From NCBI GenBank assembly GCA_002794465.1, contig MTSL01000126.1:67160-99159 (forward strand): a stretch of DNA of 32,000 nucleotides. Direction: 5' to 3'. This document shows, piece by piece, positions 3,056-32,000 of this stretch. Below the pieces are notes generated by a model. It saw only the letters and a program-made list of their open reading frames with translations. It did no database searches and was not told the origin of the DNA. A program made the position numbers and the translations under genes. Position 1 is the stretch's first letter, and every line of letters starts with the position of its first letter. The stretch comes from Paramicrosporidium saccamoebae KSL3 (taxonomy: Eukaryota; Fungi; Cryptomycota).

Positions 3056-3897
3056 ATGATTGTATCAATCGCCTCGCTTTTCTGCCTTTTTGTTACGTTC
3101 ACTGACGCTAGTCGAATTCTGGTATGGCTGTGGCCACTCTTAATATGTAGAGAAATGGTGGCATTCCAGCATCAGCCGGACCGATTATGCTGACTAATGT
3201 GTTAACTATCGGTACTTTTAATTCAAAAAATCCTACTTCTACGTTGAATTCATCCACTGATGGAAAGCGACGAAAATCCATACCAAGAGTCCGCACCTTG
3301 CTAGACAAGTCTGTTCCTGCCGGTCAAAAGGAAGCAGTGAACGGGGCAGAGCCCAAGAAAAAGAGCAAGAAAGCGCAACCTGCCAAGTCTGGCTCACGTG
3401 GCTCTGGCAAGCGCCCATCCAGTCCCGCTACCACATCCCAGTCTTCAAGGGCGAGCAATAGAGCTGCATCTTCCAGCTCCTCTTCGACTGATTTTCCTGT
3501 CCCGGACTTGAAGAGCACTGCTACAAAGTCTTTCGAAGAGTCCTTTACAAAGAGCGTCAATCAATCTCTAAGGTCATACCACAAGTCTGTGAAAGATGCT
3601 TACAAGGCCAAATTGCATAGCAAGATTCGTGCCCAGGGGGACTTGGAGCAGCAATGCAAGAAGCTGCAAGACACCCTCAACAAAAAGTTGAGCGAGAACC
3701 AAAAGTTAAAGGCCGAGCTGAAAGAGTCTAATCAAAAATTGCACGAGTTACAAAATGCGGTTGGGACGGCACGTAACTTTATAAAGTCGGCACTACGATC
3801 CAGTAAGGTAATCCAGAAGTCGGATGGTTGCGAGAGTGAAGCGAAAGAGTCCCCTGAAGAATCTGAATCCAGCGCGGCTAGTGATTCTTCCTCGTAA
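3056..3897 (+). CDS. Secreted Ser/Lys-rich orphan with coiled coil, about 270 aa, 2 exons (3056-3121, 3151-3897)
   Basis: ATG 3056 gives signal-like MIVSIASLFCLFVTFTDA. A 29-nt intron GTATGG...ATGTAG (3122-3150) joins in phase 0 to the 3187 ORF frame. TATA-like GATATAAAG lies at 3021-3029. Basic clusters KRRK and PKKKSKK, C-terminal coiled coil, acidic Ser tail. Confidence 0.7.
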
Positions 3898-7169: not shown

Positions 7170-10100
7170 ATGGTACCTATTGACCATGTGCGGTCGGGCA
7201 CAGACCTACAGGTGGGAAAGCCTACCCTTAAGGAGGTATGCATATGGAAAGTGGGGTAGAATGTAGGGCTCGCACATCTGGGTGTCTGATGAGCATGAAA
7301 GCTGGCTGGCAGCAACCGTGCTCTCTACGACCATGGTGGAATTGGAGGAGAGTGGAAAAGTTTCCTGCTGTATCAGTTATTTACGCTTGTAGGAACGAGA
7401 GCTCTTGCCAAAAGACACAGTCTTGCCGCGCAATACGACACTGGGGGAGGAGCGAATTGACGATCTCACGGGACTCGCCTTTCTCCACGAAGCTTCTGGT
7501 ACACTGTGTGCTGGCTAGACTTACTTTAGTGCTGAGTACAATAAGAAGCCGCTATGCTAATGGAAGCATATACACGTATTCGGGGATAGTCCTGACCGCT
7601 GTGAATCCTTACTGTCGACAGCCAATCTATGAACGCGAAGTTATCTGGGCGTACAATGAGCAACGCCGCGAGGAATTGGCACCACACCTGTTTGCCATTG
7701 CAGAGGATGCCCTAAGGTCGCTCTGCATTCACGGAACCAGTCAATCCATCATTGTGAGCGGCGAATCGGGGGCCGGCAAGACAATCAGTGCAAAATACAT
7801 TATGCGATACTTTGCCGAAGTGTGTGCAGTTGGGACACCGTCCCTGCAGTCCACAGAACATTTGCGGAAGGCTACAGTAGAGGACCGCGTGCTCGCTACC
7901 AATCCCATTCTGGAAGCGTTTGGCAATGCCAAGACTATCCGCAATGATAACAGTTCCCGATTTGGCAAGTATGTACAAATATTGTTCAATGAGACAAATC
8001 TCATATCGGGAGCGGCCATCAAGACGTATCTTTTGGAAAAGACGCGAGTTGTCGTGCAAGCAGAAGATGAGAGGAACTTTCACATTTTTTACCAGCTACT
8101 TGCTGGATGTCCAGAAGCAGAGAGGAGTGAGCTTGGCTTGACAAAATGGTCCGATTTTCATTATCTGGCCAGCTGTGGCACCATTGACGGTATTGATGAC
8201 TTGGAAGAGTTTGGCCTGACCAAGAATGCGATGGGGATTGCTGGATTCTCTGAAGAGCAGCAATGGAAGATTTTCAAGATACTTGCAGCCATTCTGCATC
8301 TTGGAAATGTAGATTTTGATGAAGACGGCGATGGTCATGCCAGCATAAGGGCCGAGCGCGTGACTGCACTGACAACTGCCTGCGAGCTCCTTGGGATTGT
8401 TGATCTTGGAGCCCACCTTGTTAAGAGAAAGATTGTTGCTGCACACGAAGTTGTGGATGCCTTTAATAGCCGTGTGCAGGCTTTGGCAGCTCGAGACTCG
8501 TTGGCAAAATATCTTTACTCGGCACTGTTTACTCATATTGTGGACGGACTCAATGCAAATCTCTCTCCCAGTGAAGAATGCGAAAAGTTTATCGGCGTCC
8601 TGGACATTTACGGCTTTGAAAAATTCACCATAAACTCTTTTGAGCAATTCTGCATCAATTATGCAAATGAAAAACTGCAGAATTTGTTTAACAAGCATGT
8701 TTTTGATTTGGAACAAAAGCTGTACACGGACGAAGGGATTGATTGGTCATTTGTAAAGTTTTATGATAATCAGGTTTGTATTGACCTGATCGAATCTAAA
8801 CTTGGTGTGCTTGATCTTTTGGATGAAGAGTGTCGCTTCCCGAATGGGTCGGATGCTTCTTTTGTAACCAAGCTGTATGATAAACATGCCAAGGCCGAGA
8901 CGGGCGAGTTTCTGCTGCGTCCCAAAATTTCTGTGGACGGACAATTTACAGTGAAGCATTTTGCCTATGATGTTGATTATATGTCGCATGGCTTTATTGA
9001 AAAGAATCGCGACCAAGTCCCGACAGACTTGCTAGAATTTGTTAGCAACTCTTCCAATGACTTTGTCCGCTCCTTACTAGCGCCTGGTGTCAACGCTCTA
9101 GCCGCCAGTAGGGAGAATCTCAAGGGAAGGGAAGTAAAGTTGTCTACAGGAATGGCCTTTAAGGCTAGTCTCGGCAACTTGATGGACGTCATCTCCTCTA
9201 CCCGTTCACACTACATCCGATGTATCAAACCCAACGAACAAAAGGAAGCAATGCTATTTGATGCGCCATTCGTGGTTCAGCAGCTGCGAGCGTGTGGAAT
9301 TTTAGAGACAGTGAGAATTAGTTCGGCGGGATATCCAGGTCGCTGGCCGTTTGCAGAGTTTTTGGAGCGCTTCAGATTACTTGCTGCCGATCCTTGCTGC
9401 CTTTCAGAAATCGCTGATCCGCGCACGGCATGTCTGCAGCTGCTTGGAGAGTTTAAAATGTCACCGGACCAATTCCAAGTGGGAAAGACTCGCGTTTTCA
9501 TGCGATCTGGGGTGCTGGCTGCCTTGGAGGAAGCACGGACAACAAAATTGATACTTTCCGCCACGCGGATACAAAGCGTGGTCAGGAGCGCATTGGCAGT
9601 TGCAGAAATGAAAAAGAAGGTTCAATCGGCCGGTATCGTTATTACTGTGATTCGGAGGCTATTTGGATGGACCGTGTATCAAAAGTTGGCAAAAGAACGA
9701 GCTTCATATAAGATTGTTACCGTATACTCTCGATTTGCCGCAAAAAGGCTGCTGCGTTCTGCTCAAAAGGCTTTGAGTGTAATTGTGGCCGTGCATCTCC
9801 GATTTGTTGCGCGGATGGCATCCAAAGAGCTGCACAAGACGAATGCAAGCGGCACCGTAGTAACAATAGTACGCTGCTACTTGGCCCAGCGGTCGTATCT
9901 TGCACAGGTGCTGATTGCACTGGCAGTACAATCTCGATATCGACGAAATATTGCCTGGACACAGCTGCTCAAGTACAAGGAAGAGGCTAGGTCGGTGGAG
10001 CATTTCAAGGAAACGTCGGAAATGCTGCACCAGAAGATTGCGGATCTGACACTACAACTAAAGCTTGCCGACGAACACTTGTCTTATGAGCGGGGTGTAA

Positions 10101-11919
10101 ATGCCCGGCTTCAAGAAGAACAACGGACTAGCGACACTGCCGCGGTGCACTTGGATGAGGTAACTGCCTTGCGGGCCGAATTTGAAGAGAGGATCGAGTC
10201 ATTTGAAAAGATGATTGAGAGTCTTGAGATTGCAAATAGCGAGCTATTTGAACGAAACGAAGAATTGACAAGGCAGCTTTGTGCATATAGACTGGAGAAG
10301 ACGAATGCTGGCCGTCTTCCTAGCCACAATCAGTCGCTGGCCAATATTATTTTAAGAGACACTGACACACCGCCGAGGAGTATGAGACATATGAGGGTGC
10401 TCTCATATGATTCCAAGATTGGCATGTTGAGCGAGCTGAATTTGCCAGAAATTACCCGACCGGCAATGATTCAAGCGACCAGTTCTGACCAGGTAATCAG
10501 CTGTTGATGGAGATTGTTAATTGATTATAGGAGGACTTGCGGAACGCCTTGGATGATCCAGGGTGTCTGGCGGAATTGCTGCAGGTTGTGGAGACTGCCC
10601 GGATTCCCAAGACGCCAGATGAGCGGGCCATGAAAAGTCTGGCCCGTATTCCGTGTAGAATATTCGAGCGGTGGATTTCGAGTTGGCTGAAAGTTGGATC
10701 CAGCCCAGAATTGGTCAAATCGTATCTGGACCGGGTGTTGAGTCACATCAAGTTGAATTGCATAGCTGTCCATGATAATTTTGTTATGAATGGAAGACGA
10801 GGCACTACGTCGACTAGTACGGTGGGGATTAGTGCCGACAGAAAGTTGGCATTTTGGATAGCAAACCTGTTTGATTTCCTGTGCTTCTTGCAATGGGCAG
10901 TGTCCGACTTGAATGATAGTGATCAGACGCCTACTGATGGGCAATTATCACAGAACATGCTGGTGCTATTGCAGCTAAGGACAGATGTGGCCCGGGTAAT
11001 TGAGGAATTGTACCGGGCATGGATGACGGATTTATTTCGCTTTTATTCACGACTTGGGATTGCCGCCTTACTGGATCATCAGGGTCTCACGGGTTTCACC
11101 TCTGAGCAAAATGGAAGGACCGAGCCGCAATCATCGCTAAAGATGCTCATGTTACCCTTTGCCAGAGCCATTGCTGGCGAGTTGGGTGTCACGGGAAAGA
11201 GAGGCGCTGGGATTGATGACTTGGTAGCGGCACTGGAAGAACTCGCCGATGCCATGGAATCATGCCATCTTCAAGCGGAAATTGTGATCCAACTGCTCTC
11301 CTCGGTGATTAGCAATTTCTGTTCGGCCGCATTTAACCAGATTCTGCTGAGGAAGAATTATGCCTCTTGGAAAAGGGGCATCCAGATCCAGTACAATTTG
11401 AGTCGGCTCGAGGAATGGGCCAACACGCTTCAAGCCAAACATCCAGGCTACTTTTTCTCGCCTTCCACTCTTCCAAGTCCCACCAGCCATTCAAACGTTG
11501 CAGCTACCACCACCTCTCCTCTCCTCCAGATCGAGCCGCTCATCCAGGCGGTAAAGCTATTGCAGCTGGCAAAGACACGAGTCGCCTCTGATTTGGATGT
11601 GCTCCTCGAGGCCTGTCCCAAGCTGAACGTGGTGCAAATCAGAAAGATTCTGGCTGTCTATGTTCCCGATGTGTATGAAGACGGTCCTGTCTCTCCCGAA
11701 GTGCTTCGTGGCCTGACGATGCGTGTCCACCAACAACAATACGAGGACAAAGATAGGGAGCAATTGGTCGAAACATTACCCGAATTACAGCCACAAAACT
11801 TGCCGCTCCAACTGTCGATTAAGCCGGTGGAACCAGTGTGCTTCTCGGCGATACCCACTGCGGCGGTGCCCCCACATTTATGGAAGATATTTGCACTTGT
11901 TGACTCGAATCTATTATGA
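7170..11919 (+). CDS. MYO2: Class V myosin, 5 exons (7170-7235, 7267-7359, 7393-7498, 7530-10492, 10531-11919)
   Basis: Splicing out introns of 31, 33, 31 and 38 nt restores the SH3-like start (GSHIWVSDEHESW) and DDLTGLAFLHEASVL. P-loop GESGAGKT, switch I NDNSSRFGK, switch II LDIYGFE, six IQ-like repeats with 23/25 spacing, coiled coil, DIL domain (SWKRGIQIQYNLSRLEEW). Confidence 0.93.
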
Positions 11920-12984: not shown

Positions 12985-13334
12985 GGGTTATGAGACGTGG
13001 ATTGTGAGACGTGGATTATGAGACGTGAGTTATGAGGCGTGGACTATGAGGCGTGGACTATGAGGCGTGAATTATGAGGTGTGAATTATGAGACGTGAAT
13101 TATGAGGTGTGAATTATGGGACGTGAATTATGAGGCGTGAATTATGGGGTACGAATTATGGGGTACGAATTATGAAACCGGGACTATGAGACCTGGATTG
13201 TGAAATCGGGACTATGAGACGTGGATTGTGAAATCGGGACTATGGGACGTGGATTATGAAACCGGGACTATGGGACGTGAATTATAAAATCGGGACTATG
13301 AGACGTGAATTATAAAATCGGGACTATAGGATCT
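12985..13334. repeat. 14-bp minisatellite, 25 copies, with a 28-bp higher-order repeat in the right half
   Basis: Units such as GAATTATGAGACGT and GGACTATGAGACGT. From 13167 to 13334 the units alternate ...GAAATCG and ...GAGACGT (6 dimers). Confidence 0.95.
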
Positions 13335-13538
13335 GTATTTTAAAAGATATATATCCCACGTGATTTAATAGACACCTTTTTGCCAACTTTGGTGGATCGA
13401 TCATGATAGCTCTTGATTTAGTACAATCGTCCGTATCTGCAGTTGTACTGAAAAAGTATACAATGTATTTCCTTTTTAGGGATGATTGGGGGCAGGACTT
13501 TTATCACAAATACCTTTCAGGGTATTGCGCGCTGTCGA

Positions 13539-19153: not shown

Positions 19154-21925
19154 ATGGAGGAAAAGGCAAAGTCACGGTTCAGCTCTTTGGATGTTAGAGC
19201 AGCAACTGTCGAATTAAAACCGTCATTAGTCGGTGCACATCTTCAGAATATTTATGATATGAATTCAAGGACATATCTACTGAAATTCACCAAGAAGGAT
19301 GCCAAAGTTCTTTTGCTAATCGAGTCAGGTGTACGCATTCACTCTACCCGTTTTGACAGGGAGAATCCCAACGTGCTACCTTCAGCCTTCGCCGGGAAGC
19401 TTCGAAAGCATCTTAGAGAGAGGAGGCTGACGAAATTTGAACAACTTGGGTTTGATCGCGTAGTTCATTTCGAGTTTGGCCATGACACTCGTCCGGAACA
19501 GACCTTTCATCTCTTTCTAGAGCTTTACGCAATGGTACATGCCATGTGCTTTGTATCATATTTTTAGGGGAATGTTATTTTGACAGACCACCAAATGAGG
19601 GTCATTAGCCTCATCAGAGAGGTCAAGGTAACAGACAAGAACACGGGCGAGGAAAGGAAGCTATTGACAGTGGGAATGGTCTATGATGCATTGTCGTACC
19701 AAAACCTCAATCTTCCGTCAGAGGAAGTGTTACTGGAACATGTCGCGAGTGCTGGCAATGAAAGTGTAAAAAATAGTCTTCGGTCGGTATTTAAAACAGT
19801 TGCTGCAGAAATGATTGAATCTTGTCTGAAAAAAAGTGGCCTGCATGGCAGCGAAAAGGCGTGCGAGGTGAAAGACCAGCTCCCTGGAGTATTTGAATTG
19901 ATTAGAGAGTTGGCAGACAAACTCAACAGTCAAGACTATGAAATGCCTGGTTTCATTCGCAAGTCTCCTACGGGCAGAAGTATTGAATTTGGTCCACTTT
20001 TAGGTAGCCTCTCCTTGAATAGCAGTCAGTTTGATAACTTTAATTCGGCTGCAGATGAGTACTTTTATCAGTTGGAAGAGACCAAAATTAAGGATCGCAA
20101 GCGTCAGGTTGAGGATGCAGTTGTCAAAAAGTTTGATGCCATTAGGAGAGAGCAAGAATCCCGCATCTCTTCATTAGAGACAGGCATTAAGAATTACCAA
20201 TTCCTGGCTCAAGTGATTGAGGCCAATATTAAGCCTGTGGAGGAGGCAGTTTTGGTGATAAACACTGGGCTGCAGAATGAACTATCTTGGAAAGATCTTG
20301 AAGCCTTGATCAAAGTTGAACAGTCCAAGGGACGTCCTACTGCGCTGTTAATATCCAAGCTGATGCTCATTGACTTTTTGATTCAGCTGAAGCTTCCATT
20401 TGGATCAGAGTCTGTCTTGGTTGAAGTAGATATCCGACTCGGTGGACATGCTAATGCTAATCGATACTATGAAATGCGAAAGAATGCCATGGAAAAACTA
20501 GCCAGGACCAGATCGGCCTTTGAACAGGCAATGAAATCTGCCGAGGCAAAAGTTAGGGCTGATAGTAAAAAGGACAAGAGACGAGACCAGCACTTGATTC
20601 CCAAGAGAAAGATTTTGTGGTTTGAAAAATACAATTGGTTTATCAGCTCTGACGCCCATCTGGTCATTTCCGGAAAGGACATGCACCAGAATGAGTACTT
20701 GGTTAAGCGACTCTTAAAGCCAGGAGACGTCTATGCTCATGCCGACCTGCCTGGAGCATCATCCGTTATTGTAAAGAACCACCGAAAACCAGTTGACGGC
20801 AGCGACACTGCACCAGAAATACCACATCGGACACTTGTTGAAGCGGGATCGTTTTCACTGTGTTTTAGTAAGGCTTGGGACGCCAAAATTGTCACTTCGG
20901 CTTGGTGGGTATTTGCTCGCCAAGTCTCCAAAACTGCACCATCGGGTGAATTTTTACCCACTGGATCTTTTATGATCAGGGGCAAAAAGAATTTCCTGCC
21001 TCCGTCCCCTCTTATTCTTGGGTTTGGCTTTATGTTTATCCTGGACGAAGAATCATCTGCCAAGCGCAAAGCATCCAGACTTGCCAAAGAGGCCGCCCGC
21101 GAGGCCGACATTACCGGAGACGATACCGGAGGGGTTGTCAGAAAAGATCCCACCATTAGTGTCAGGGAGCAAAAATACATGGATCAACTTTTAGATCAAT
21201 CTGAAGATTTGGAAGAATACATTACCACCACGACTAAAGAGGTTGAGTCACTTCAAATTGAGCCCACCAAGACACGTAAACCGGAGAAAGAGGAAAAAGA
21301 AGAGAAAATTGCTCGTGCTGATGCTTTTGTGGATATTCGTACGGATACTCGTGCGGGTGCTGGTACTCGTGGAAAGCACGGCAAGCAGAAAAAAATAAAG
21401 GAAAAATACAGGCATCAAGATGACGAGGAGCGCAAGATGCGACTAGAATTACTGGGTTCGAAAGCAAAACAACCTGAAGTTAAAATGGTCCAACTACCAA
21501 AGCCTGTAAAGTTGGCTCCTGCAAAGAAGACTCCTGCAAAGATTACTGTGGAAGACGACACACTGGAGGAGGAATTACCTGGGATCGGTGAGCTTGGCTA
21601 CATTGACTCTATTGTCGGGAATCCAGTTCCAGAAGAAGTTACGTTGGGCATCATTGCCGCAGCTGCACCGTTTTCAGTCATGCAACATTACAAATATCGC
21701 GTAAAGTTACTTCCTGGGAATCTCAAACGTGGCACTGCGGCAAAAACTGCCGTCTCTCTCATGCTATCCGAAAACAAGTCATTGGGTACCCCTCGTGAAA
21801 GAGACTTGATCCGATCCGTCACTGATACAGAGTTAAATAGTACTATTCCTGGAAAGGTTCGTATTTCTGGGAGCGGAGTGGAGCTGAGCAAAGTAAAAAA
21901 GTCACTAAAGAAGAAGAAGAAATAA
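19154..21925 (+). CDS. RQC2: Ribosome quality control subunit Rqc2/Tae2/NEMF, 2 exons (19154-19534, 19568-21925)
   Basis: NFACT-N (RFSSLDVRA...LQNIYD...IESGVRIH); a 33-nt intron joins ELYAM|GNVILTD; NFACT-R (WFEKYNWFISSD, GKDMHQNEYLVKR, HADLPGA); NFACT-C (APFSVMQHYKYRVKLLPG). Confidence 0.93.
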
Positions 21926-22146
21926 AGTGTGAGTATGGTGAGTGTGATGGGTGTGGCGAGTGTGGTAATTGTGGTGAGTGTGATGAGTGCGGTGATTGTG
22001 AGTATGAGCGTGAACGACAATGGGAGTGTAGGAAAATAAGAGTTCGAGTTCGAGTTCAAGCTCGATTCCAAGTTCGAGTTCAGGTTCAACTTCAATTTCA
22101 AGTTCAAGCTCGATTCCAAGTTCAAGTTCAAGTTCGAGTTCAAGTC
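21926..22146. repeat. Two abutting simple repeats between the convergent RQC2 and PDI genes
   Basis: GT-rich roughly 9-bp degenerate repeat at 21926-22012 (GTGAGTGTG-like); hexamer (RAGTTC)n, about 17-18 units, at 22040-22146. Confidence 0.85.
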
Positions 22147-22195: not shown

Positions 22196-23425
22196 TTAGA
22201 GCTCACTTTTTTGAGAGGGTATCGGAATGCCTCCAATTTGAGCAATGCGCGCCAAAATGTTACGGCGTTTGCGGAATTCATTCATTTTGCCCGCGTCTAT
22301 TGAGGCTGATTCAATGAGTTGATCAAGACGATCCAGTTCGCGCGATATGAATGCCGGTCCGTGAGCTTCAAGTTTTTCCAACGTCTTTACATAGAATATT
22401 GCCGAGCTAAAGTATTACTCCATAGCCATATGATATGGGTACAAGTCTTTGGTGGAGCGTGCCAGTTCGCCAGCTTGCTCATATACACGTTCGTGATAGT
22501 CGGGATTGGTGAAAAATTCTCTGACGTACTTGTCCATCGTGCGATCCGTTCCATAGTCTTTGGAATGAATGTCGGCCCACTCTTTGGGAGAATGCTTCTT
22601 GACAAACTCCAAAAGCCCTTTTAGACTGTTGGAACCATTATAGTCAATGACCTTGTTGTCCCTTCCAAAGAGCTTGATGGTTGGGAAGGCGTCAACTTTG
22701 TGCTGTGTGGCAATAGCTGCATGGCTCTCACAGTCGATTTGGGCAATCACAACATTCGTATTGTCCTTGAAGGAGGTGGCAAGCTTTTTGTAAATGGGAG
22801 CGAGTCGCTTGCAATGTCCACACCCTATTATAATGAGTATACTCTATGATTTGCGCACAGGGAGCATAGAACTCGACCAAGACAATCTTGTTCGGGTCCA
22901 TGACTAGGTCATTAAAGTTTTCCCCAGTAAGCTGAACGGGATTGCTCACACTAGCGTGAGCCCCCACTAAAACGGATCATCAACGTTTACTCAGATCTAT
23001 TTACGGATCCTGCTCTCGACGAAGCGCTTCATCGATTCAAAATCGTGTCCACAATCGGCGTCCTCAACGCGGCCGGAGGGATGGAAGAGCTTTAGAGTCG
23101 GGTAGCCTCCAATGTTGTACGGTCTGCGGATGCGGGCGTAATGGTCGGCGTCAATTTGCGCAATAGTAACACGGCCATCACCGCCAAAGTAAGATCCCAG
23201 ACGTTGATAGGCAGGATTCATGTTGTTGCAGTGTCCGCACCACGGGGCATAGAACTTGACAAAGACAAATTTTCCGCTGTGGATCGCCTAGTGGTCAAGC
23301 AAAGAATCCGGCAGGCTTACATTGTTGAGACTATCTGGGTCAAGCTCGCGCACATATTCGGGCGTGCAGAGCACTACAGCAACAAAGGCCAAGAAAGCAA
23401 AGAAGACGGAGGAGATGTTCGCCAT
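22196..23425 (-). CDS. Protein disulfide isomerase, ERp38/TigA type (two thioredoxin domains plus ERp29-C domain), 5 exons
   Basis: Signal MANISSVFFAFLAFVAVVLC; two WCGHC motifs, the second split by an intron; ERp29-like FYVKTLEKL...RELDRLDQLI...RRNIL; ER-retention-like KSEL. Introns 23288-23320, 22967-23004, 22825-22858 and 22407-22442 (33, 38, 34, 36 nt). Confidence 0.9.
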
Positions 23426-23561: not shown

Positions 23562-24620
23562 ATGATAAAGAACATTCCTCCGCAGGCCAAACGCCTGGCC
23601 ATCCTGGGGCTCTTGCTCTTTCTAATTCTTGACGCCCTCTTCTTTGGGTTGATTGGGAACGCAGTTTCCCGCATTTCTGGCGAGCGTCGTAATTTCCAAG
23701 GCCGGATCCATCTGTACTCGAGTCTTCCTGGCCGCACCAAGGCACCCAAGAAGATTGCAATTGTCACCCATTACTCACCCGATGGCTATGGCCAAGAACT
23801 CCGCAGGCTCACCTGGGCGAATAAGAAAAAGTACGCCGAGGCCCGCGGCTACGATATTTATGATGCCGAAACTAATCCTGTCATCAAGTCAAAGATGGAG
23901 AGTGTCAGGGACAAGATGAAAAACTTTTACTACTTCAAATATATTGCTGTTCAAGAGCTTCTCAATGGCGGTGAGGCCACTGGCGGGAAACAGTATGACT
24001 GGGTCGTCTGGGCAGACGCCGATGCCATCTTTTTGAACTTTGGCAAAAAGTTTGAAGACATTGTTGATGATCGCTTTGACGTGGTTGTCACAGCTGGACC
24101 TCCTGACAACCCCACCTGGACAGGCGTTGTCAATGCTGGAAGCTTCATTGTCAAAAATAGCGAATTTTCCCAGACTTTCCTCGAGGATGTGCTGCAGATG
24201 AGCCAGACCCACTGTGGAGAATTTGTGATTGAATATCCTGATGCTGGTACTGCTGTAAATGGGTGGCTTCAGGTGTGCAATTCGGATGGAGGCTACTGGC
24301 TATCTGACCAAGGAATCCTGATTGCCCTTTACTCCTTCAAACCGGCAGAATACCGATGCCACTTTAAAAAGACCTGGTTCCGGGCCTTTTCATCCGAGTT
24401 TCCCTGGTATGGCCCAGGAGATCTTGCAGTGCACTTTCCTGGACGGTCAATGGACGATCGTAGACGGCTTATTAAAGCATTCACCAAGTTTACCGACTTT
24501 AAAAATGGAGCTGTCGAGTACAAGTTTACTGACCTACTGGACCCCGATGATAGTGTTACTTCTGACCTGGTCGAGTTGGAAGAGTTTTACAACGACATGA
24601 ACCCCACCTGTGATGCCTGA
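23562..24620 (+). CDS. Glycosyltransferase family 34 (Gma12/Mnn10-like), type II membrane protein
   Basis: N-terminal TM helix; YDWVVWADADAIF (DxD motif); NAGSFIVKN; DQGIL; GDLAVHFPG. Confidence 0.85.
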   Translation: MIKNIPPQAKRLAILGLLLFLILDALFFGLIGNAVSRISGERRNFQGRIHLYSSLPGRTKAPKKIAIVTHYSPDGYGQELRRLTWANKKKYAEARGYDIYDAETNPVIKSKMESVRDKMKNFYYFKYIAVQELLNGGEATGGKQYDWVVWADADAIFLNFGKKFEDIVDDRFDVVVTAGPPDNPTWTGVVNAGSFIVKNSEFSQTFLEDVLQMSQTHCGEFVIEYPDAGTAVNGWLQVCNSDGGYWLSDQGILIALYSFKPAEYRCHFKKTWFRAFSSEFPWYGPGDLAVHFPGRSMDDRRRLIKAFTKFTDFKNGAVEYKFTDLLDPDDSVTSDLVELEEFYNDMNPTCDA

Positions 24621-24690
24621 GTGTGTGGGCGCGTGTAGGTGTGCGAGTGTGTGAGTGTGTGAGTGTGTGAGTGTTTGGGTATGTCGGTGT
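24621..24690. repeat. GT-rich microsatellite, (GTGTGA)n-like, immediately after the GT34 stop
   Basis: GTGTGTGGGCGCGTGTAGGTGTGCGAGTGTGTGAGTGTGTGAGTGTGTGAGTGT. Confidence 0.75.
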
Positions 24691-24710
24691 GTGGACATAG
24701 GATATAGGAT

Positions 24711-24878
24711 ATGAATCTTTACTACAAATTTTACTACAAATTTTACTATGAATTTTACTATAAAATTTACTATGAAGTTTACTATGAATTTTACTATGAA
24801 TTTTATTATGAATTTTACTATGAATTTTACTATGAATTTTATTATAAAATTTACTATGAATTTTACTATAAAATTTAC
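24711..24878. repeat. 12-bp AT-rich minisatellite, about 14 copies
   Basis: Consensus TATGAATTTTAC; ends about 40 bp before the Tel1/ATM ATG. Confidence 0.92.
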
Positions 24879-24916: not shown

Positions 24917-27900
24917 ATGCTCGCGGGACGGCATGAACCAGTCGAGGCCGAAGTGGGGCTGTTGGGCTTGCATTTAACGTCCGAAAGAGCCAAGGAAAGA
25001 ACTGAAGCATTGGGAAAGCTTCAAGATCTTTTGAAGGACAAGAAATGGGTGAGGATGCTGACCACAGCGCAATGCAATCGGATTGTCCATTCGTTTTTTT
25101 CAATGCTGGCCATTGAGGTCAAGTATGGCGACAAGGGAGATTGCATTCTTCCTTCAGCCCTCTCGAAATTGAGACAGCTGCTGAGAGACTCGGCAGCCCT
25201 TCTCTCTACCATCACATGTCGGCCCATTATCTTGGAATGCATCGACGACGTACTAGATTCGCTTGTCAGCTTGAGGCTGGAAGAACTTTTACCTGATACA
25301 TATCGCGCCATTAATGTGCTACTTTCTGACAGGAAACACCTGTTGGCCTGCTCAAGGGATCATGTGAGAATTCTCTACGATACGTGTACTTTTATGAAAA
25401 GTTCTTCTGGTCGAGGGGAATTGTCAAAGACTATGACGTATGTCGGAGAATATGCCTATGAAATGAATGACCTATATACTTTGAAGAATTTGGTGCAAAT
25501 ATGCCTGGAGCATTTGCTGGGTGAAGAGCAGGGTATCCCTGATGCGGTCGCATCCCATCTTTTGCGGACATTTGAAACGTGTCTACGGGGGCTCAAGGAT
25601 GCGTATCCCGTGTTTAGCCGATCCATTGTCCGCCGTTTACTTGACGGACTGAGTAGTAAGGGATTTGTTAAACGAGCAAGGCTGGTGGAGGAGATTGTAC
25701 TTGTATGCGAAACAGCATCTTCATGTATTGTTATTGATCCTGCAGCATGCGACAGGGTGTCAAAGTTGCTACTTGAAGAGGCAGTTTTTAGTCGCTACAG
25801 GCTGGAATCTTGCAACCCCGCGGAGCTGGTGTCCCAATCTTGTAAGAATACTGCCGTCATGCCATTCCTAAGCTGTCTTTCAAAGTACTGCAAACTACCA
25901 AAAGTACCAATATTTGAATCCAAATCTAGTCTCAGTAAAACCACTGCCATCTTTCTGTCAAAGTGTCTCTTTCATCGTGATTCCGAGTTTGACTCTGGAC
26001 TTTGGCAAAATCGTCCAAGCCAATGTTCTCCTGTCGATGCATCTTGGATGATGCTTGCCCTTTCACTGACAAACTACCCGAGCCCACCCACAGACCAAGT
26101 CTTGGAATATGTCGTCTCAAGTCTATCAAGACCGCTGCAGTCGGAATCTGCAGCAAACTTGCTGAAATCGGCCATTTCGAGATTTTCAATCCACTTGAGC
26201 ACTATGTCGTCGGCCATTACAAATGCAGAGTTGACCCCATTGCTTGTTGAGCTGATGGCACTTAATTATATCACGAGGTATAGAGACATCCTCTGGTCAG
26301 ATTCGGCAAAATTGTGCTTCAGAGATGCCATAAATAGTTTGGCATTCATGATAAGCAATTTGGAAAGCCGACAAGTTCCTGGAAAGCTGCTTGCAATCAT
26401 GCCCAAAATTTCAACCTTTTTTGCCGTGGTCTTTGGGAAAGAGTTTCATAATGGCGGCTATGCGCAAATGTGTCAGAGCCTGCTAGATTGTCTTGATGAG
26501 GTGATAAAGTCTATTGAACCAGATGCTTTCAGCAACATTTTGCGGCTAAAGTGGTCATGTTCTGCCGTAACATCTGAGCAATCTGTTGCACTGTTTACAG
26601 TTTCGCTGCGAATCCTCCGTTCTGCTCTGACAATGGCTTGTGATGCTGAAATTGGCCATCTGTTTGATATCATCGATACGATGCAATGCAAGCCCCATGC
26701 TGCCCAATATCTTTCCGAGATTGCCAGTCCGATTATAGTGGACAGCATGTCCTTTGATAAGACAGGCTATGACCGCATCATTGCCATGTGCATTGGAGTC
26801 CTCTTGTCCAATCGGCAAGCAAGTATGGTGGAAGAGGAGTTTCAGTCGCTGATGGACGATTTCGACACTAAAGCAGCCTATATGTGTCTTGAGACGTTGA
26901 CAACCATTTACGAAAAGCTGATGAATGTGAATGTTAAGACTGATGAAATTGAACAGGTCATTTTGGACTGTGGCATCTTTATTTTGGATCAACTTGTTGA
27001 ACATGAACTGTCTATTCAAGATGTGGCCAAGATTTTCGAAAGACTATCCAAAAATCTTTCAGACGATTTACTAGAAAGAGGTGCCGACTTGATTGGTCAT
27101 TTTTTCGGTCTCGTAGATTCAGCTACCATTACAAAGTTCTGCCTTGAACTCTTACAGAGACAGCCATCAAGTATTGGAACCCGGATGCGCGAGAAAATGT
27201 CAACCATCATCGAGAGCTATGATCTGGAATCAGTTCCCTCTATCACTCGAGAGAATTTGTACCAAATGCAGCAAGTACTCTCTTTGGACATTGTAGAAAA
27301 AATAGTGCTGCCAGAAACAGTACACTACACGTTGTGTCGTTTACATTATAGGAACCTATTGATCCGGCTCTTTCACACGGCGTTGTAGAAAAAATAATGC
27401 TGCCAGAAACAGTATACTACATGTCGCGCCGTTTATACCGTAGGAATCTATTGATCCGGATCTTTCACACGGCGTTGTAGAAAAAATAATGCTGCCAGAA
27501 ACAGTACACTACATGTCGCGCCGTTTATACCGTAGGAATCTATTGATCCGGATCTTTTAGACGATGTCATTTCGGCCAAAGTTATTCAAATTTGTAAACG
27601 GGACGATCTTCCGGGGACAGCTGTACTGGCAACGATCAATGAGATCCTACTCAATGTTACCAATCCGCTGGACCGCTTGGTGGAGGCTAAGCAGTACTTG
27701 AATATGATTCTTCCCTCTGAGGATCATGTTTTGAAGGCTCGCTGTTTTTTACTTGGCAAATCATCAGGAGTGGCTGGCTTTTTCACAAGGGGAGTTGTAG
27801 AACTGGAAGAGTCATTTTGGTTTTGGCAATGTTGTTCCAAGTCATGCTTGCAGATGCCTATTGCCTTTGAATTTGTTGATGCAGCCTTTTGCCCGGTCAT

Positions 27901-30900
27901 TGCAAGAGCAATGCTTGGTCATTTCGATGGTCACCGCGAAATTTCTTCAAAGGCCATCAAGTTTTTCAAGAGCGCCCTTCCTCCGCTCGACTTTGAGCAA
28001 AGATTCAAATCGTCCCTATTCAAGATTCTGGCGTTTGTGGTACTGTATTATCACGAACTTTCCACTCCAGACGATGGTATGGTAGCTGAAGGACGTTTAA
28101 TTTGGTGTAGTGTTTCAGCAGTGCTTTGCACATGTTTGCTCAACTGTCAAGTTGGAAGTCAAGAATGTATTTGACAGCATTTATGGGAGTATTCTGCTAA
28201 TGGAGATGATGAACACTTGTAATAACGACGTCGCGCTCCTATCTGTGCATTTACGTTCCACACTCTTTCTTGTCTCTAAATGCTCCAATGTGCATCCTCG
28301 CATCACTGACTATCTGCTCGCTCACATTGAGCAGAGTGCTTCTAGGGGGGCTGGTGACACGCTAAGGAAAGCGCTAGAATCTCGACGCACTGAAACCGGG
28401 CTGGACAGCGTCTTGCGCACGTCTGACGTCCAATTAGGCATCTGCCATGAAATTATGCTCAAGTTTCATGTGGTTCCGTTGAAATTGTGCCCAGAAGTTT
28501 TAAAGATTGTCAGTGAAGCGGTTAATTCAGTTGCAAGCGACCGTGTTCCAGAAGAACTTTTATTCGCGCGCATTCCAAATGGATCTCGGTTTATTCCCAA
28601 AGCCTCATTGGTAGATAAAGCCATTTGCGAGGATGATGCTGACGCTCAGTTTATCGCGCAAAGATTGTTGGATACGGGAGCACTGTCACTATTTGAGCCA
28701 ATGTTCAAGTCTGCCAGTGTTGTCCGCGCTTGTGGGCGTTGGATCTGTGCTGCTCTACTGGCCAGCAGCCCCGCCAAAAGAGACGATTTTACTAGCCGTT
28801 GCCCACCGTCATTTATAGCATGCCTTGCTGAGGGGCTGAAAATTTTGCAAGTGTCCTTGGCTACTCCAGAGATTGGAAGGATTGCTCATTTCACGACAGA
28901 TCATGTTGTCAACTTGTTCTTGGCTGAAACTATGAATAGCACGGATAAACAGCTATTCCATTCAATATTTAATTCCTTGCCAGATACGGACTATCAGAAT
29001 TATTCAAAAATCCTTGGTGAGTCGATGGATCTTGAGCAAGAGGATCAAATTTTGGACCGACAGCTTGTCAAGTACGCTAAAGAGTCTTTACTTTTAAATC
29101 AATGCTGGGACATTACCGACGTTCCACCATCATATGATCATTGTAATGAAGACAACCGACTCTATCTAGTACTCCGTAGCATGGTCGCCGATCAAAGTGT
29201 ATTGGATAAAAGCCAGTTTCCAGCAGATCCTGCACTTTCACTTGTGGTTGCTAGTGCCAAGGCGCTGGTTAATCCGGAGAAGCGGGGCACTATTACAAAT
29301 TTGGCGTTTCAGAAATTTATGGAGAGCAAGAATGACCCACGGAAACTATACAAGGTGCAGCGGGCAATCCAAGTATCTGCAGACCGGCTTGATCTTGTAG
29401 ATTTGCAAGTCATGGCCAAAATTGCAAAGGCTACATTTTTATGGAAGGCTAACGTGAAAGAGAGGGCCCTGCAAGTCATTTACGATGCTGCATGCAGCGA
29501 TCATGAGTCAGCACTTGATGAGATCAGGACTGCACTCTTGTTAAAAGTATCAAAGTATGCATGGAAGATGAAGAGCAAAACGGCAAATCAAATCCGACGA
29601 GAATATCTAGACCGAATCGACGTCTCCAAGCACACTCTTCTCCAGCGTTCAAAGGCCTTTAATGCGACAGCACGATTTTATGACGAGCAATACCAAAACC
29701 AAGAAGCATTGGGATTGCTGGCAGCTAGAAAAAAGCTGCTAGTGGACTCTCGAAAGGACTTGTCCGAGCAGACAACTTTACGAGATGCGAAATTGTATGA
29801 AAAGAGCAAGCTCGAGTTGAAGCGACAAATACGACAGGATGAATTGGACCTGGAAAGGATGCTGAATGACAGGGCATCGTATGGTCTGAAAGCTGCTGCC
29901 AATTACTTGAAAGCAATCACACATGGTGACAAGTATGACATGACGGTATTCAGAATCTGCTCCCTGTGGTTTTCATTTAAAAATGCCCCTCAGATTAATG
30001 AAATGCTAAATCGCCAGGTTCCGACCCACAAATTTATTCCGCTAATGTACCAGCTTGTTGCCCGGGCAGAACAAACAGAAGATGATGATTTGTTTCAGAC
30101 TACCTTGCAGAACCTCCTTCAAGATATCCTCTGCAACCATCCTTACCACAGTCTTCATCAGTTGCTCGCAATGCGATCGAGTGGGAGCACAGCAATAGGT
30201 TCAAAGCGGAGGCTAGTGTGTAGTGATAATATTCAGGATAGGCGCGCGCAGGCCGCAGGCCAAATAGTTGCCAAAGGAAAATGCTTGGCAATCAAGGACT
30301 TGATCTGCGACACTGAAAAGTTGTGGGCTGCGTATACGGAGATGGCATCATCAGAGCTGCCGCCCGATACCTCGACCAAAGTTGTACATGCATTTGAGGC
30401 TCGTTGGTGTATTCGGAAGATGAACGACCTGTGTTGTCCTGTGCTCACTCTGTCCATTCCTGTAGATGTATCCGGCCGTTATGCGGGCCTAACAACGGTT
30501 GTTGGATTTGCTCCTGAAGGCTACCGCGTGATTGGTGGTGTCAACTTGCCCAAAATTGTCCAGTGTCGAGGCTCTGATGGGCGACTCTATCGACAGCTGG
30601 TCAAGGGACGAGATGATGTTCGACAGGTATATATAGGACTGAAATGTCATGTTTGTAGGATGCCGTTATGGAGCAGATATTTAGGCTGGTGAACAGAGTA
30701 TTGTCAACAAATCCCCTTACAGCTCAGCTGAGTCTTCGAACGTACCGAGTGATTCCGCTGCAGCCGCTAGCAGGTGTGATTGAATGGATCGAAAATGCAG
30801 TTCCCATCGGCGACTATCTCAACTCTGCCCACCCACGATTCCGCCCACAGGATATTGCACCCAAAGAGGCTCGTGGCATCATGAAGAGGGAGTTTGAAAG

Positions 30901-31594
30901 GCCCGACTCTAACCCCTCGTCAAAGCACTGTGTGTTTATGGAAGAGATCCAAGCGCGCTTCAAGCCAGTCTTTCGCCATTTCTTTCTAGAATCGACCTAT
31001 TCGATACACCAGTGGTACTGTAAAAGACTGCACTATATCAAGTCGACTGCAGTTGGCTCGATGATTGGCTACATTGTAGGCCTCGGAGACAGGCACTGCC
31101 AGAACATTATGATGGATCAGGATAGCGGGGAGCTGATCCATATTGACTTGAACATGATTTTCGAGTTTGGAAAGACGCTGCGGATCCCAGAGCGAGTCCC
31201 ATTTCGTCTAACTCGCGACCTGGTAGACGGTATGGGATTTGCCGGAGTAGAGGCCGGGTTCACAGGCAAGGCAACCAGCGTGATGATTGCTGTCAGGAAC
31301 AAGATGGACATTATGTTGATGGTAATGGAGGCGTTCAAGTATGATCCCTTGTATCGTTGGGCCAATCTGAATGCGGCTGTCAAGGAAACTTTTGCTCCCG
31401 ATACGCCGATTGACGATTCTGGGACGGTTAACAAGGAAGCGGACCGGGCCTTGCTTCGAGTAAGAGAAAAGCTGCTTGGACTTGAAGAGGGAACCTTACT
31501 AAGCGAGCGCGGCCAAGTCTCTTACCTCGTATTGTCAGCTACAAACGAAGAATTGCTAGCCCAAATGTATCATGGATGGCAGCCATGGATGTAG
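24917..31594 (+). CDS. TEL1: PIKK kinase Tel1/ATM, about 2171 aa, 6 exons (24917-27319, 27352-27411, 27444-27503, 27536-28076, 28111-30626, 30659-31594)
   Basis: TAN motif LTSERAKERTEAL matches (L/V/I)xxx(R/K)xx(E/D)RxxxL. Kinase motifs KGRDDVRQ|DAVMEQ, GLGDRHCQN and HIDLN...PERVPFRLTRDLVDGMG; FATC LAQMYHGWQPWM. Five introns of 32, 32, 32, 34 and 32 nt restore one frame. Confidence 0.9.
27291..27556 (+). repeat. 92-bp tandem repeat, about 2.9 copies, inside Tel1/ATM (each unit = 60-nt exon sequence plus 32-nt intron)
   Basis: Units start at 27291, 27383 and 27475; copies 2 and 3 are nearly identical and copy 1 is more diverged. Confidence 0.92.
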
Positions 31595-31746: not shown

Positions 31747-32000
31747 ATTGTGGTCGTACTCTCGCTACGCAACACAAAGAGTCTGTAGAAGGATTGAACT
31801 GACTTATTAAAGTCAAAGTGTTGTGCGATGAACTGGACTGAGTCAGATCAGGGCGCCTCGTTAACTAACCTCTCGATAATAGGCTCATTTCGAACAAAGA
31901 AGGCGCTGATCCGTCTACCTGACAATTGAGAGGGGTTACTCAGCAAAGGGCTGCAGGAGGTGGCCACGCCAGATGCTTATCACATTGATGTGGGGGGGGG

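Follow-up and report, generated by a model that had tools for sequence, protein, structure and literature searches.

A 92-bp exon–intron cassette repeated in tandem within the ATM/Tel1 gene of Paramicrosporidium saccamoebae, with a predicted gain of two ultra-short introns

Internal tandem duplication can raise the number of introns in a gene, and here we describe such a case in Paramicrosporidium saccamoebae KSL3, a parasite of amoebae, in whose gene for the DNA-damage kinase ATM/Tel1 a 92-bp exon–intron cassette stands in three copies. The locus lies in a 32,000-nucleotide stretch of contig MTSL01000126.1 (assembly GCA_002794465.1, positions 67,160–99,159), referred to as the window, whose own numbering is used below; a single-copy ortholog, L001, serves as the outgroup. 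The described case to which it belongs by type is that of Arabidopsis TOUCH3 (TCH3), in which two tandem internal duplications each carried a whole intron together with both of its exon flanks (Knowles & McLysaght, 2006, as summarized in PMC4974935); the authors of PMC4974935 class TCH3 as multiplying an existing intron and not as creating a new one. In ATM, as in TCH3, two tandem internal duplications would have raised the intron number and given the protein repeats. There are nevertheless distinguishable differences, since the P. saccamoebae unit is only 92 bp long, the gene encodes a PIKK kinase in a Rozellomycota parasite and the insert is a 20-residue segment. In TCH3, which is calmodulin-like, the repeat is reportedly a structural domain repeat, unlike the segment found here. 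Internal gene duplications with complete introns were also seen by Gao & Lynch (2009, PNAS 106:20818, as cited in PMC4974935), and in ATM too a segmental duplication inside the gene carries complete introns. Compared with that survey of model genomes, the ATM case has an unduplicated outgroup and two steps that can be dated.

A different route is the model of Rogers (1989), in which a duplicated AGGT-containing exon segment yields a new intron while the protein remains unchanged; the examples given in the summary of PMC4974935 are ATP2A1 (Hellsten, 2011) and 24-bp repeats in fission yeast (Zhu & Niu, 2013). Tandem duplication is the event that raises the intron number in this model as well, but we rejected de novo creation for ATM, where the new introns align to, and appear to have been copied from, the old intron and the protein is predicted to be 40 residues longer. 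The case had been presented, in a preliminary description made from the letters of the window alone, as new introns being created by a rarely observed route. The first part does not hold, since an existing intron was multiplied, and the second is true of the Rogers AGGT model only, whole-intron duplications being documented (TCH3; Gao & Lynch, 2009; PMC4974935). In potato RdRp, a recent lineage-specific tandem duplication also spans an intron/exon boundary and takes its splice signals from the parental intron, but the duplicate holds only the 3' part of the intron and recruits a cryptic 5' site (PMC4974935), whereas each ATM copy is a complete intron. Dispersed intron copies of the introner or transposon type were not found beyond the array in the window; the array copies carry exon flanks and sit in tandem. 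Each copy contains the whole intron with both exon flanks, the exon part amounts to 60 nt and an intron-bearing single-copy outgroup exists (L001 only). Judged by these sequence comparisons, the case is the multiplication of a pre-existing intron of the TCH3 type, a mechanism that is already known.

Anatomy of the array

A repeat search identified three head-to-tail 92-bp units in register, of which the second and third are 87% and 84% identical to the first. Tandem Repeats Finder reports 27291–27557 with a period of 92, 2.9 copies, 92% matches, no indels and a score of 450; the whole array amounts to 276 bp and corresponds to 94450–94725 of MTSL01000126.1. An exon-derived 30-mer occurs at three sites in the window, all of them in the array, and an intron 32-mer with up to three mismatches matches only units 2 and 3, the chance expectation being 0 in both searches. 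In the cassette, a 32-nt phase-0 intron is flanked by the last 29 nt of one exon and the first 31 nt of the next, giving 60 nt of exon per unit; it is the shortness of the intron, at 32 nt, that keeps the unit down to 92 bp. The features are as follows.

27291–27382 (+): repeat unit 1, 92 bp; exon end (29 nt), intron 1 and exon start (31 nt), the latter with a derived tail, CACACGGCG
27320–27351 (+): predicted intron 1, 32 nt, phase 0, GTACACTACACGTTGTGTCGTTTACATTATAG; at the position of the L001 intron 1183–1215
27352–27411 (+): predicted new 60-nt exon, phase 0-0, encoding EPIDPALSHGVVEKIMLPET; missing in L001
27383–27474 (+): repeat unit 2, 92 bp
27412–27443 (+): predicted intron 2, 32 nt, GTATACTACATGTCGCGCCGTTTATACCGTAG
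27444–27503 (+): predicted new 60-nt exon, phase 0-0, encoding ESIDPDLSHGVVEKIMLPET; missing in L001
27475–27566 (+): repeat unit 3, 92 bp, with the tail TAGACGATG
27504–27535 (+): predicted intron 3, 32 nt, one base different from intron 2

All three intron copies have the form GTA...TAG. The frame that is read without splicing reaches a stop at 27386–27388, and retention of any single intron leads to a stop within about 23 codons. Excision of the three 32-nt segments links the open reading frame (ORF) starting at 24917 to the frame of the ORF starting at 27677 and yields one open frame of 2171 residues with TAN-like, PI3/PI4-kinase and FATC matches. Since each copy consists of a complete intron and 60 nt of exon, a step of 92 bp is frame-neutral once all of the introns are spliced. 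The anatomy given in the preliminary description was thus reproduced throughout: about 2.9 copies of a 92-bp unit, 32-nt GT..AG segments at the three intron coordinates, two 60-nt exons encoding EPIDPALSHGVVEKIMLPET and ESIDPDLSHGVVEKIMLPET, a frame restored into the 27677 ORF and truncation of the unspliced frame at 27388.

From their form, length, frame and shared position, the repeat copies are predicted to be spliceosomal GT–AG introns of an ultra-short class in this genome. The 11 supported introns across four genes of the window measure 32–38 nt; all have TAG at the 3' end, and all but one, which starts with GTG, have GTA at the 5' end. The array introns, at 32 nt and of the form GTA...TAG, fit this local class, and the three introns of L001 have the same form. 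Outside ATM, a 33-nt intron in a NEMF-like gene (19535–19567, +) lies under an NFACT_N match that spans its junction, and a 38-nt intron in a myosin-V-like gene (10493–10530, +) joins frames of 1087 and 462 codons. In a PDI-like gene on the reverse strand (−), removal of four introns of 33, 38, 34 and 36 nt (23288–23320, 22967–23004, 22825–22858 and 22407–22442) gives a 362-residue ORF in which the second FYAPWCGHC motif is restored. Two further candidate introns on the + strand, 3122–3150 (29 nt) and 7236–7266 (31 nt), are unverified. The papers searched yielded no description of the intron lengths or of an ultra-short intron class of P. saccamoebae, and the word 'intron' never occurs in the main text of its genome paper (Quandt et al., 2017; MTSL00000000). 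The notion of a rule of about 32 nt enforced by the spliceosome does not stand in its strict form, as the window introns span 32–38 nt, and the 120-bp intron published for the S23 gene of P. saccamoebae (PMC6349667) likewise casts doubt on it.

When the intron copies were folded as RNA, the z-scores lay between −1.1 and +2.0 and showed no structure signal, and Rfam had no match anywhere in the window. An AlphaFold2 model of 346 residues around the array, calculated without an alignment, showed the repeat as coil between helices, but with a mean pLDDT of 42.9 it was too poor and was not used.

The host gene and its single-copy ortholog

The spliced repeat region, used as the query of a protein search, returned a single relative, P0121, whose source is L001, a 4693-bp JGI metagenome contig (Ga0451581_009510, sample 3300042203). 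With its three short introns removed, L001 encodes a partial ATM with 79% amino-acid identity over 1519 aligned residues. It comes from an uncultured relative of P. saccamoebae (dS 0.87) with ultra-short introns at the same three positions. Where the window has the repeat, L001 carries just one intron, of 33 nt (1183–1215, GTATGCTGCTTAGTGTATTATCTTATATTGTAG), identical in position and phase to that of the window; no tandem repeat was found in L001, and the protein alignment shows a gap of exactly 40 residues in L001 opposite the two extra units. Its other two introns, of 32 nt each, share the positions of the 34- and 32-nt introns of the window. The presence of one intron at the site, the lack of a repeat and the 40-residue gap indicate that the lineage of P. 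saccamoebae multiplied an intron that was already in place. An ortholog with one intron and no 40-residue insert is also what had been predicted beforehand. L001 is the sole relative, and hence the only outgroup, found in the collections searched. A protein-pattern scan of JGI metagenome contigs for further relatives was empty and a degenerate DNA pattern for DPDLLDD[VI][VI]S gave nothing, although neither search of this collection returned even the contig of L001.

In a protein search, the spliced protein matches the deposited record P0001, 'Serine-protein kinase ATM [Paramicrosporidium saccamoebae]', and its best non-self matches are fungal Tel1 proteins (E = 1e-85), ahead of ATR (1e-53) and TOR. 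The corrected 2171-residue protein contains a PI3/PI4-kinase domain (PF00454, 177 bits) followed by FATC (PF02260, 41.7 bits), whereas the N-terminal TAN motif, at 25.5 bits, falls slightly below its cut-off of 27.1. By these matches the gene is best assigned to ATM/Tel1, as the preliminary description had it, and the assignment appears sound. Its further description as an essential kinase is not established; deletion of tel1 is viable in yeast. Apart from the array, the gene has the following parts.

24917–31594 (+; MTSL01000126.1:92076–98753): whole ATM/Tel1 gene
24917–27319 (+): exon 1, 801 codons, TAN-like N-terminus
27536–28076 (+): exon following the array
28077–28110 (+): 34-nt phase-1 intron, orthologous to L001 1757–1788 (32 nt)
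28111–30626 (+): exon, FAT region and start of the kinase region
30627–30658 (+): 32-nt phase-0 intron, orthologous to L001 4317–4348 (32 nt)
30659–31594 (+): final exon, kinase domain, FATC and stop codon

The ortholog-supported model therefore has five introns of 32, 32, 32, 34 and 32 nt. Direct reading of the 33 nt that follow the intron 28077–28110 shows six differences to L001, five of which are synonymous in the proposed frame. Versions of this intron of 31, 37 or 40 nt were ruled out by the ortholog and this pattern of synonymous differences, leaving 34 nt. Excision of 30627–30658 restores the conserved RQ|DAVMEQIF, which reads RQDAIMEQVF in fungal Tel1.

Downstream of the array, the gene has remained under purifying selection. 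Between the window and L001, dN/dS is 0.12 over 1127 aligned codons (dS 0.87), and the 1330 codons downstream of the array contain no stops. When time is gauged by how far the old copies have diverged, a frameshift since the first duplication predicts 12–19 stops in these codons, and none of 500 simulations stayed open. The same test is powerless for the recent duplication (P = 0.40). The open codons and the purifying selection imply that the older duplication did not kill the gene, and the absence of the 12–19 expected stops argues that at least the first added cassette is removed from the mRNA with the frame kept.

Duplication history and competing accounts

In a four-way alignment with L001, the three units are far nearer to one another than to the L001 copy, and ancestral states are kept in the outer flanks, namely in the exon end of unit 1 and in the tail of unit 3. 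This tail, TAGACGATG, compares with TAGACGACA in L001 and can be regarded as the ancestral downstream flank because it matches the single-copy ortholog, whereas units 1 and 2 share the derived junction tail CACACGGCG. The final 10 nt of units 1 and 2 (27373–27382 and 27465–27474) are TCACACGGCG, those of unit 3 (27557–27566) are TTAGACGATG and those of the ortholog are TTAGACGACA; TCACACGGCG differs at four positions from unit 3 and the ortholog, and LDD becomes SHG, a change that may go back to filler from the first duplication or to divergence afterwards. Introns 2 and 3 are 1 nt apart, and intron 1 stands 9 nt from the former and 8 nt from the latter; in their first 82 nt, units 2 and 3 show a single difference. 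Between units 1 and 2, differences fall on 3/60 exon positions versus 9/32 intron positions (Fisher p = 0.003). The simplest history that these comparisons suggest is an old 92-bp tandem duplication and a later, recent 92-bp duplication with a register that starts in the junction tail. The earlier claim of two successive duplications is consistent with the unit comparison, and the intron differences on which it was based were reproduced. To call the process 'caught in progress' would be apt for the second duplication only, as the first is old, its intron copies differing by 25–28%. A one-way C-to-T decay behind the nine intron transitions was also considered, but was dropped because the L001 states are mixed.

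We consider it likely that the array is an internal tandem duplication of an exon–intron cassette whose three introns are spliced separately. The ancestral ATM/Tel1 gene would have had one ultra-short phase-0 intron at the site. Tandem duplication of a 92-bp segment (29 nt of exon, the 32-nt intron and 31 nt of exon) would then have followed in the P. saccamoebae lineage, probably via replication slippage or unequal exchange, and a second 92-bp duplication, presumably much later, would have produced units 2 and 3. If each intron is spliced, the mRNA would gain two 60-nt exons and the N-terminal solenoid of the protein two further 20-residue copies of a proline-rich segment. As deduced from the genomic letters, the array thus probably adds two introns and 40 residues.

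Several points weigh against this reading. Two protein searches of the region returned no transcript-derived fragment. The contrast between exon and intron parts is fragile, for between units 1 and 3, which form the proper old pair, there are 7/60 versus 8/32 differences (p = 0.14). Six of these seven exon-part differences affect the first or second position of a codon and none, taken singly, is synonymous, which suggests that the inserted peptides are without purifying selection. With a 120-bp intron on record for this organism (PMC6349667), length is no bar to the array leaving as a longer intron. Finally, a single assembly and a single ortholog are at hand, and it is from this assembly only that the near-identical units 2 and 3 are counted as two.

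These points bear first on a rather unlikely alternative in which the array leaves, in some or all transcripts, as one 216-nt intron (27320–27535) or as a 124-nt unit-skipping intron, the internal 60-nt segments being pseudo-exons always or partly and the protein being ancestral or only 20 residues longer. Every such join keeps the frame, the exons being 60 nt long and of phase 0-0, and the apparent lack of purifying selection on the inserted peptides, together with the published S23 intron, would fit such splicing. On the other side, the 11 supported introns of the window are all 32–38 nt, and the exon parts of units 1 and 2 are better conserved than their intron parts. In organisms with short introns, splice sites are joined to their nearest partners across the intron, and exon skipping is rare.

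It is improbable that the copy number is partly an artefact of assembly, with a true locus of two or a variable number of units and with units 2 and 3 mis-assembled. Such an artefact would accord with the one difference in the first 82 nt of units 2 and 3 and with the single assembly: an exact look-up of the unspliced 823-residue ORF, made for an independent assembly, found no record, and P0001 was found on one NCBI contig only. Unlike a collapsed or expanded repeat, though, introns 2 and 3 differ by a base and the tails of units 2 and 3 differ as well, and the 12 differences between units 1 and 2 prove at least two units. At 276 bp, the array is also short enough for read pairs to bridge.

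The deposited GenBank model is very unlikely to be correct. It places introns at 27293–27351 (59 nt) and 27440–27560 (121 nt), giving ...LSLDI|EPIDPALSHGVVEKIMLPETVYYMSRRLY|HDVISAK..., and it is an annotated coding sequence with an open frame and GT..AG introns. P0001 was rebuilt exactly from exons 24917–27292, 27352–27439, 27561–28081, 28152–30626 and 30677–31594, so that the deposited ATM introns measure 59, 121, 70 and 50 nt, none of which agrees with the ortholog-supported model. The 70- and 50-nt introns delete the conserved VFQQCFAHVCSTVK and DAVMEQ; of these, VFQQCFAHVCSTVK is conserved in L001 and DAVMEQ in both L001 and fungal Tel1. Further, part of intron 2 is translated (VYYMSRRLY), the splice sites 27292/27293 and 27560/27561 lie off the conserved intron site, and residues that align to L001 are dropped on both sides (VEKIVLPET and ESIDPDLL). 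The annotation was made by MAKER with Augustus trained on Rhizopus oryzae, according to the P. saccamoebae genome paper.

That the 92-bp duplications are frameshifts in a decaying pseudogene, or in a gene for a truncated protein, can scarcely be credited: in its favour are a unit length of 92, indivisible by 3, and the stop reached at 27388 without splicing, but the 1330 downstream codons are open with a dN/dS of 0.12 against L001, the 12–19 stops expected since the older duplication are absent (0 of 500 simulations stayed open) and the kinase and FATC domains are intact.

Annotation of short introns and significance of the array

Given the training of Augustus on Rhizopus oryzae, short introns are probably mis-modelled across the assembly. 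As the introns of the window are 32–38 nt long and the annotation misplaces all of those in ATM, many of the P. saccamoebae protein models used in comparisons of Rozellomycota and Microsporidia may hold small errors. The annotation problem exposed here may be a more useful result than the array itself.

Tandem-repeat formation seems to be common in the P. saccamoebae genome, as far as the window reflects it. Microsatellites of the (GTGAGTGTG)n type occur at 21929–22000 and 24618–24693, at or just past the stop codons of a NEMF-like gene (ORF end 21925) and a GT34-like gene (ORF end 24620, overlapping the start of the microsatellite by 3 nt). A 12-nt unit, TATGAATTTTAC, is repeated 14 times at 24710–24878, upstream of ATM and only about 40 bp from its start codon (24917), and at 12988–13345 lies a large intergenic minisatellite in which periods of 14, 28 and 56 nt are nested. 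The window ends in a G run (gtggggggggg, 31990–32000) that is internal to the GenBank contig.

A more speculative proposal, which we hold to be unlikely, is that introns of about 32–38 nt are so short that an intron with its exon context fits a slippage unit of minisatellite size, with the result that the number of introns and micro-exons could grow by ordinary tandem-repeat dynamics; the array might also vary in copy number between strains and might be spliced to ATM isoforms with 0, 20 or 40 additional residues. If true, it would serve as a natural experiment on the strictness with which intron length is gauged by a reduced spliceosome.

The array in ATM/Tel1 offers an unusually clean and polarised case of intron multiplication, in which the source intron, the unit boundaries and two dated steps are contained within 276 bp and an unduplicated outgroup is available. 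It also illustrates why a duplication of a length indivisible by 3 can do no harm if an intron is copied along with it.

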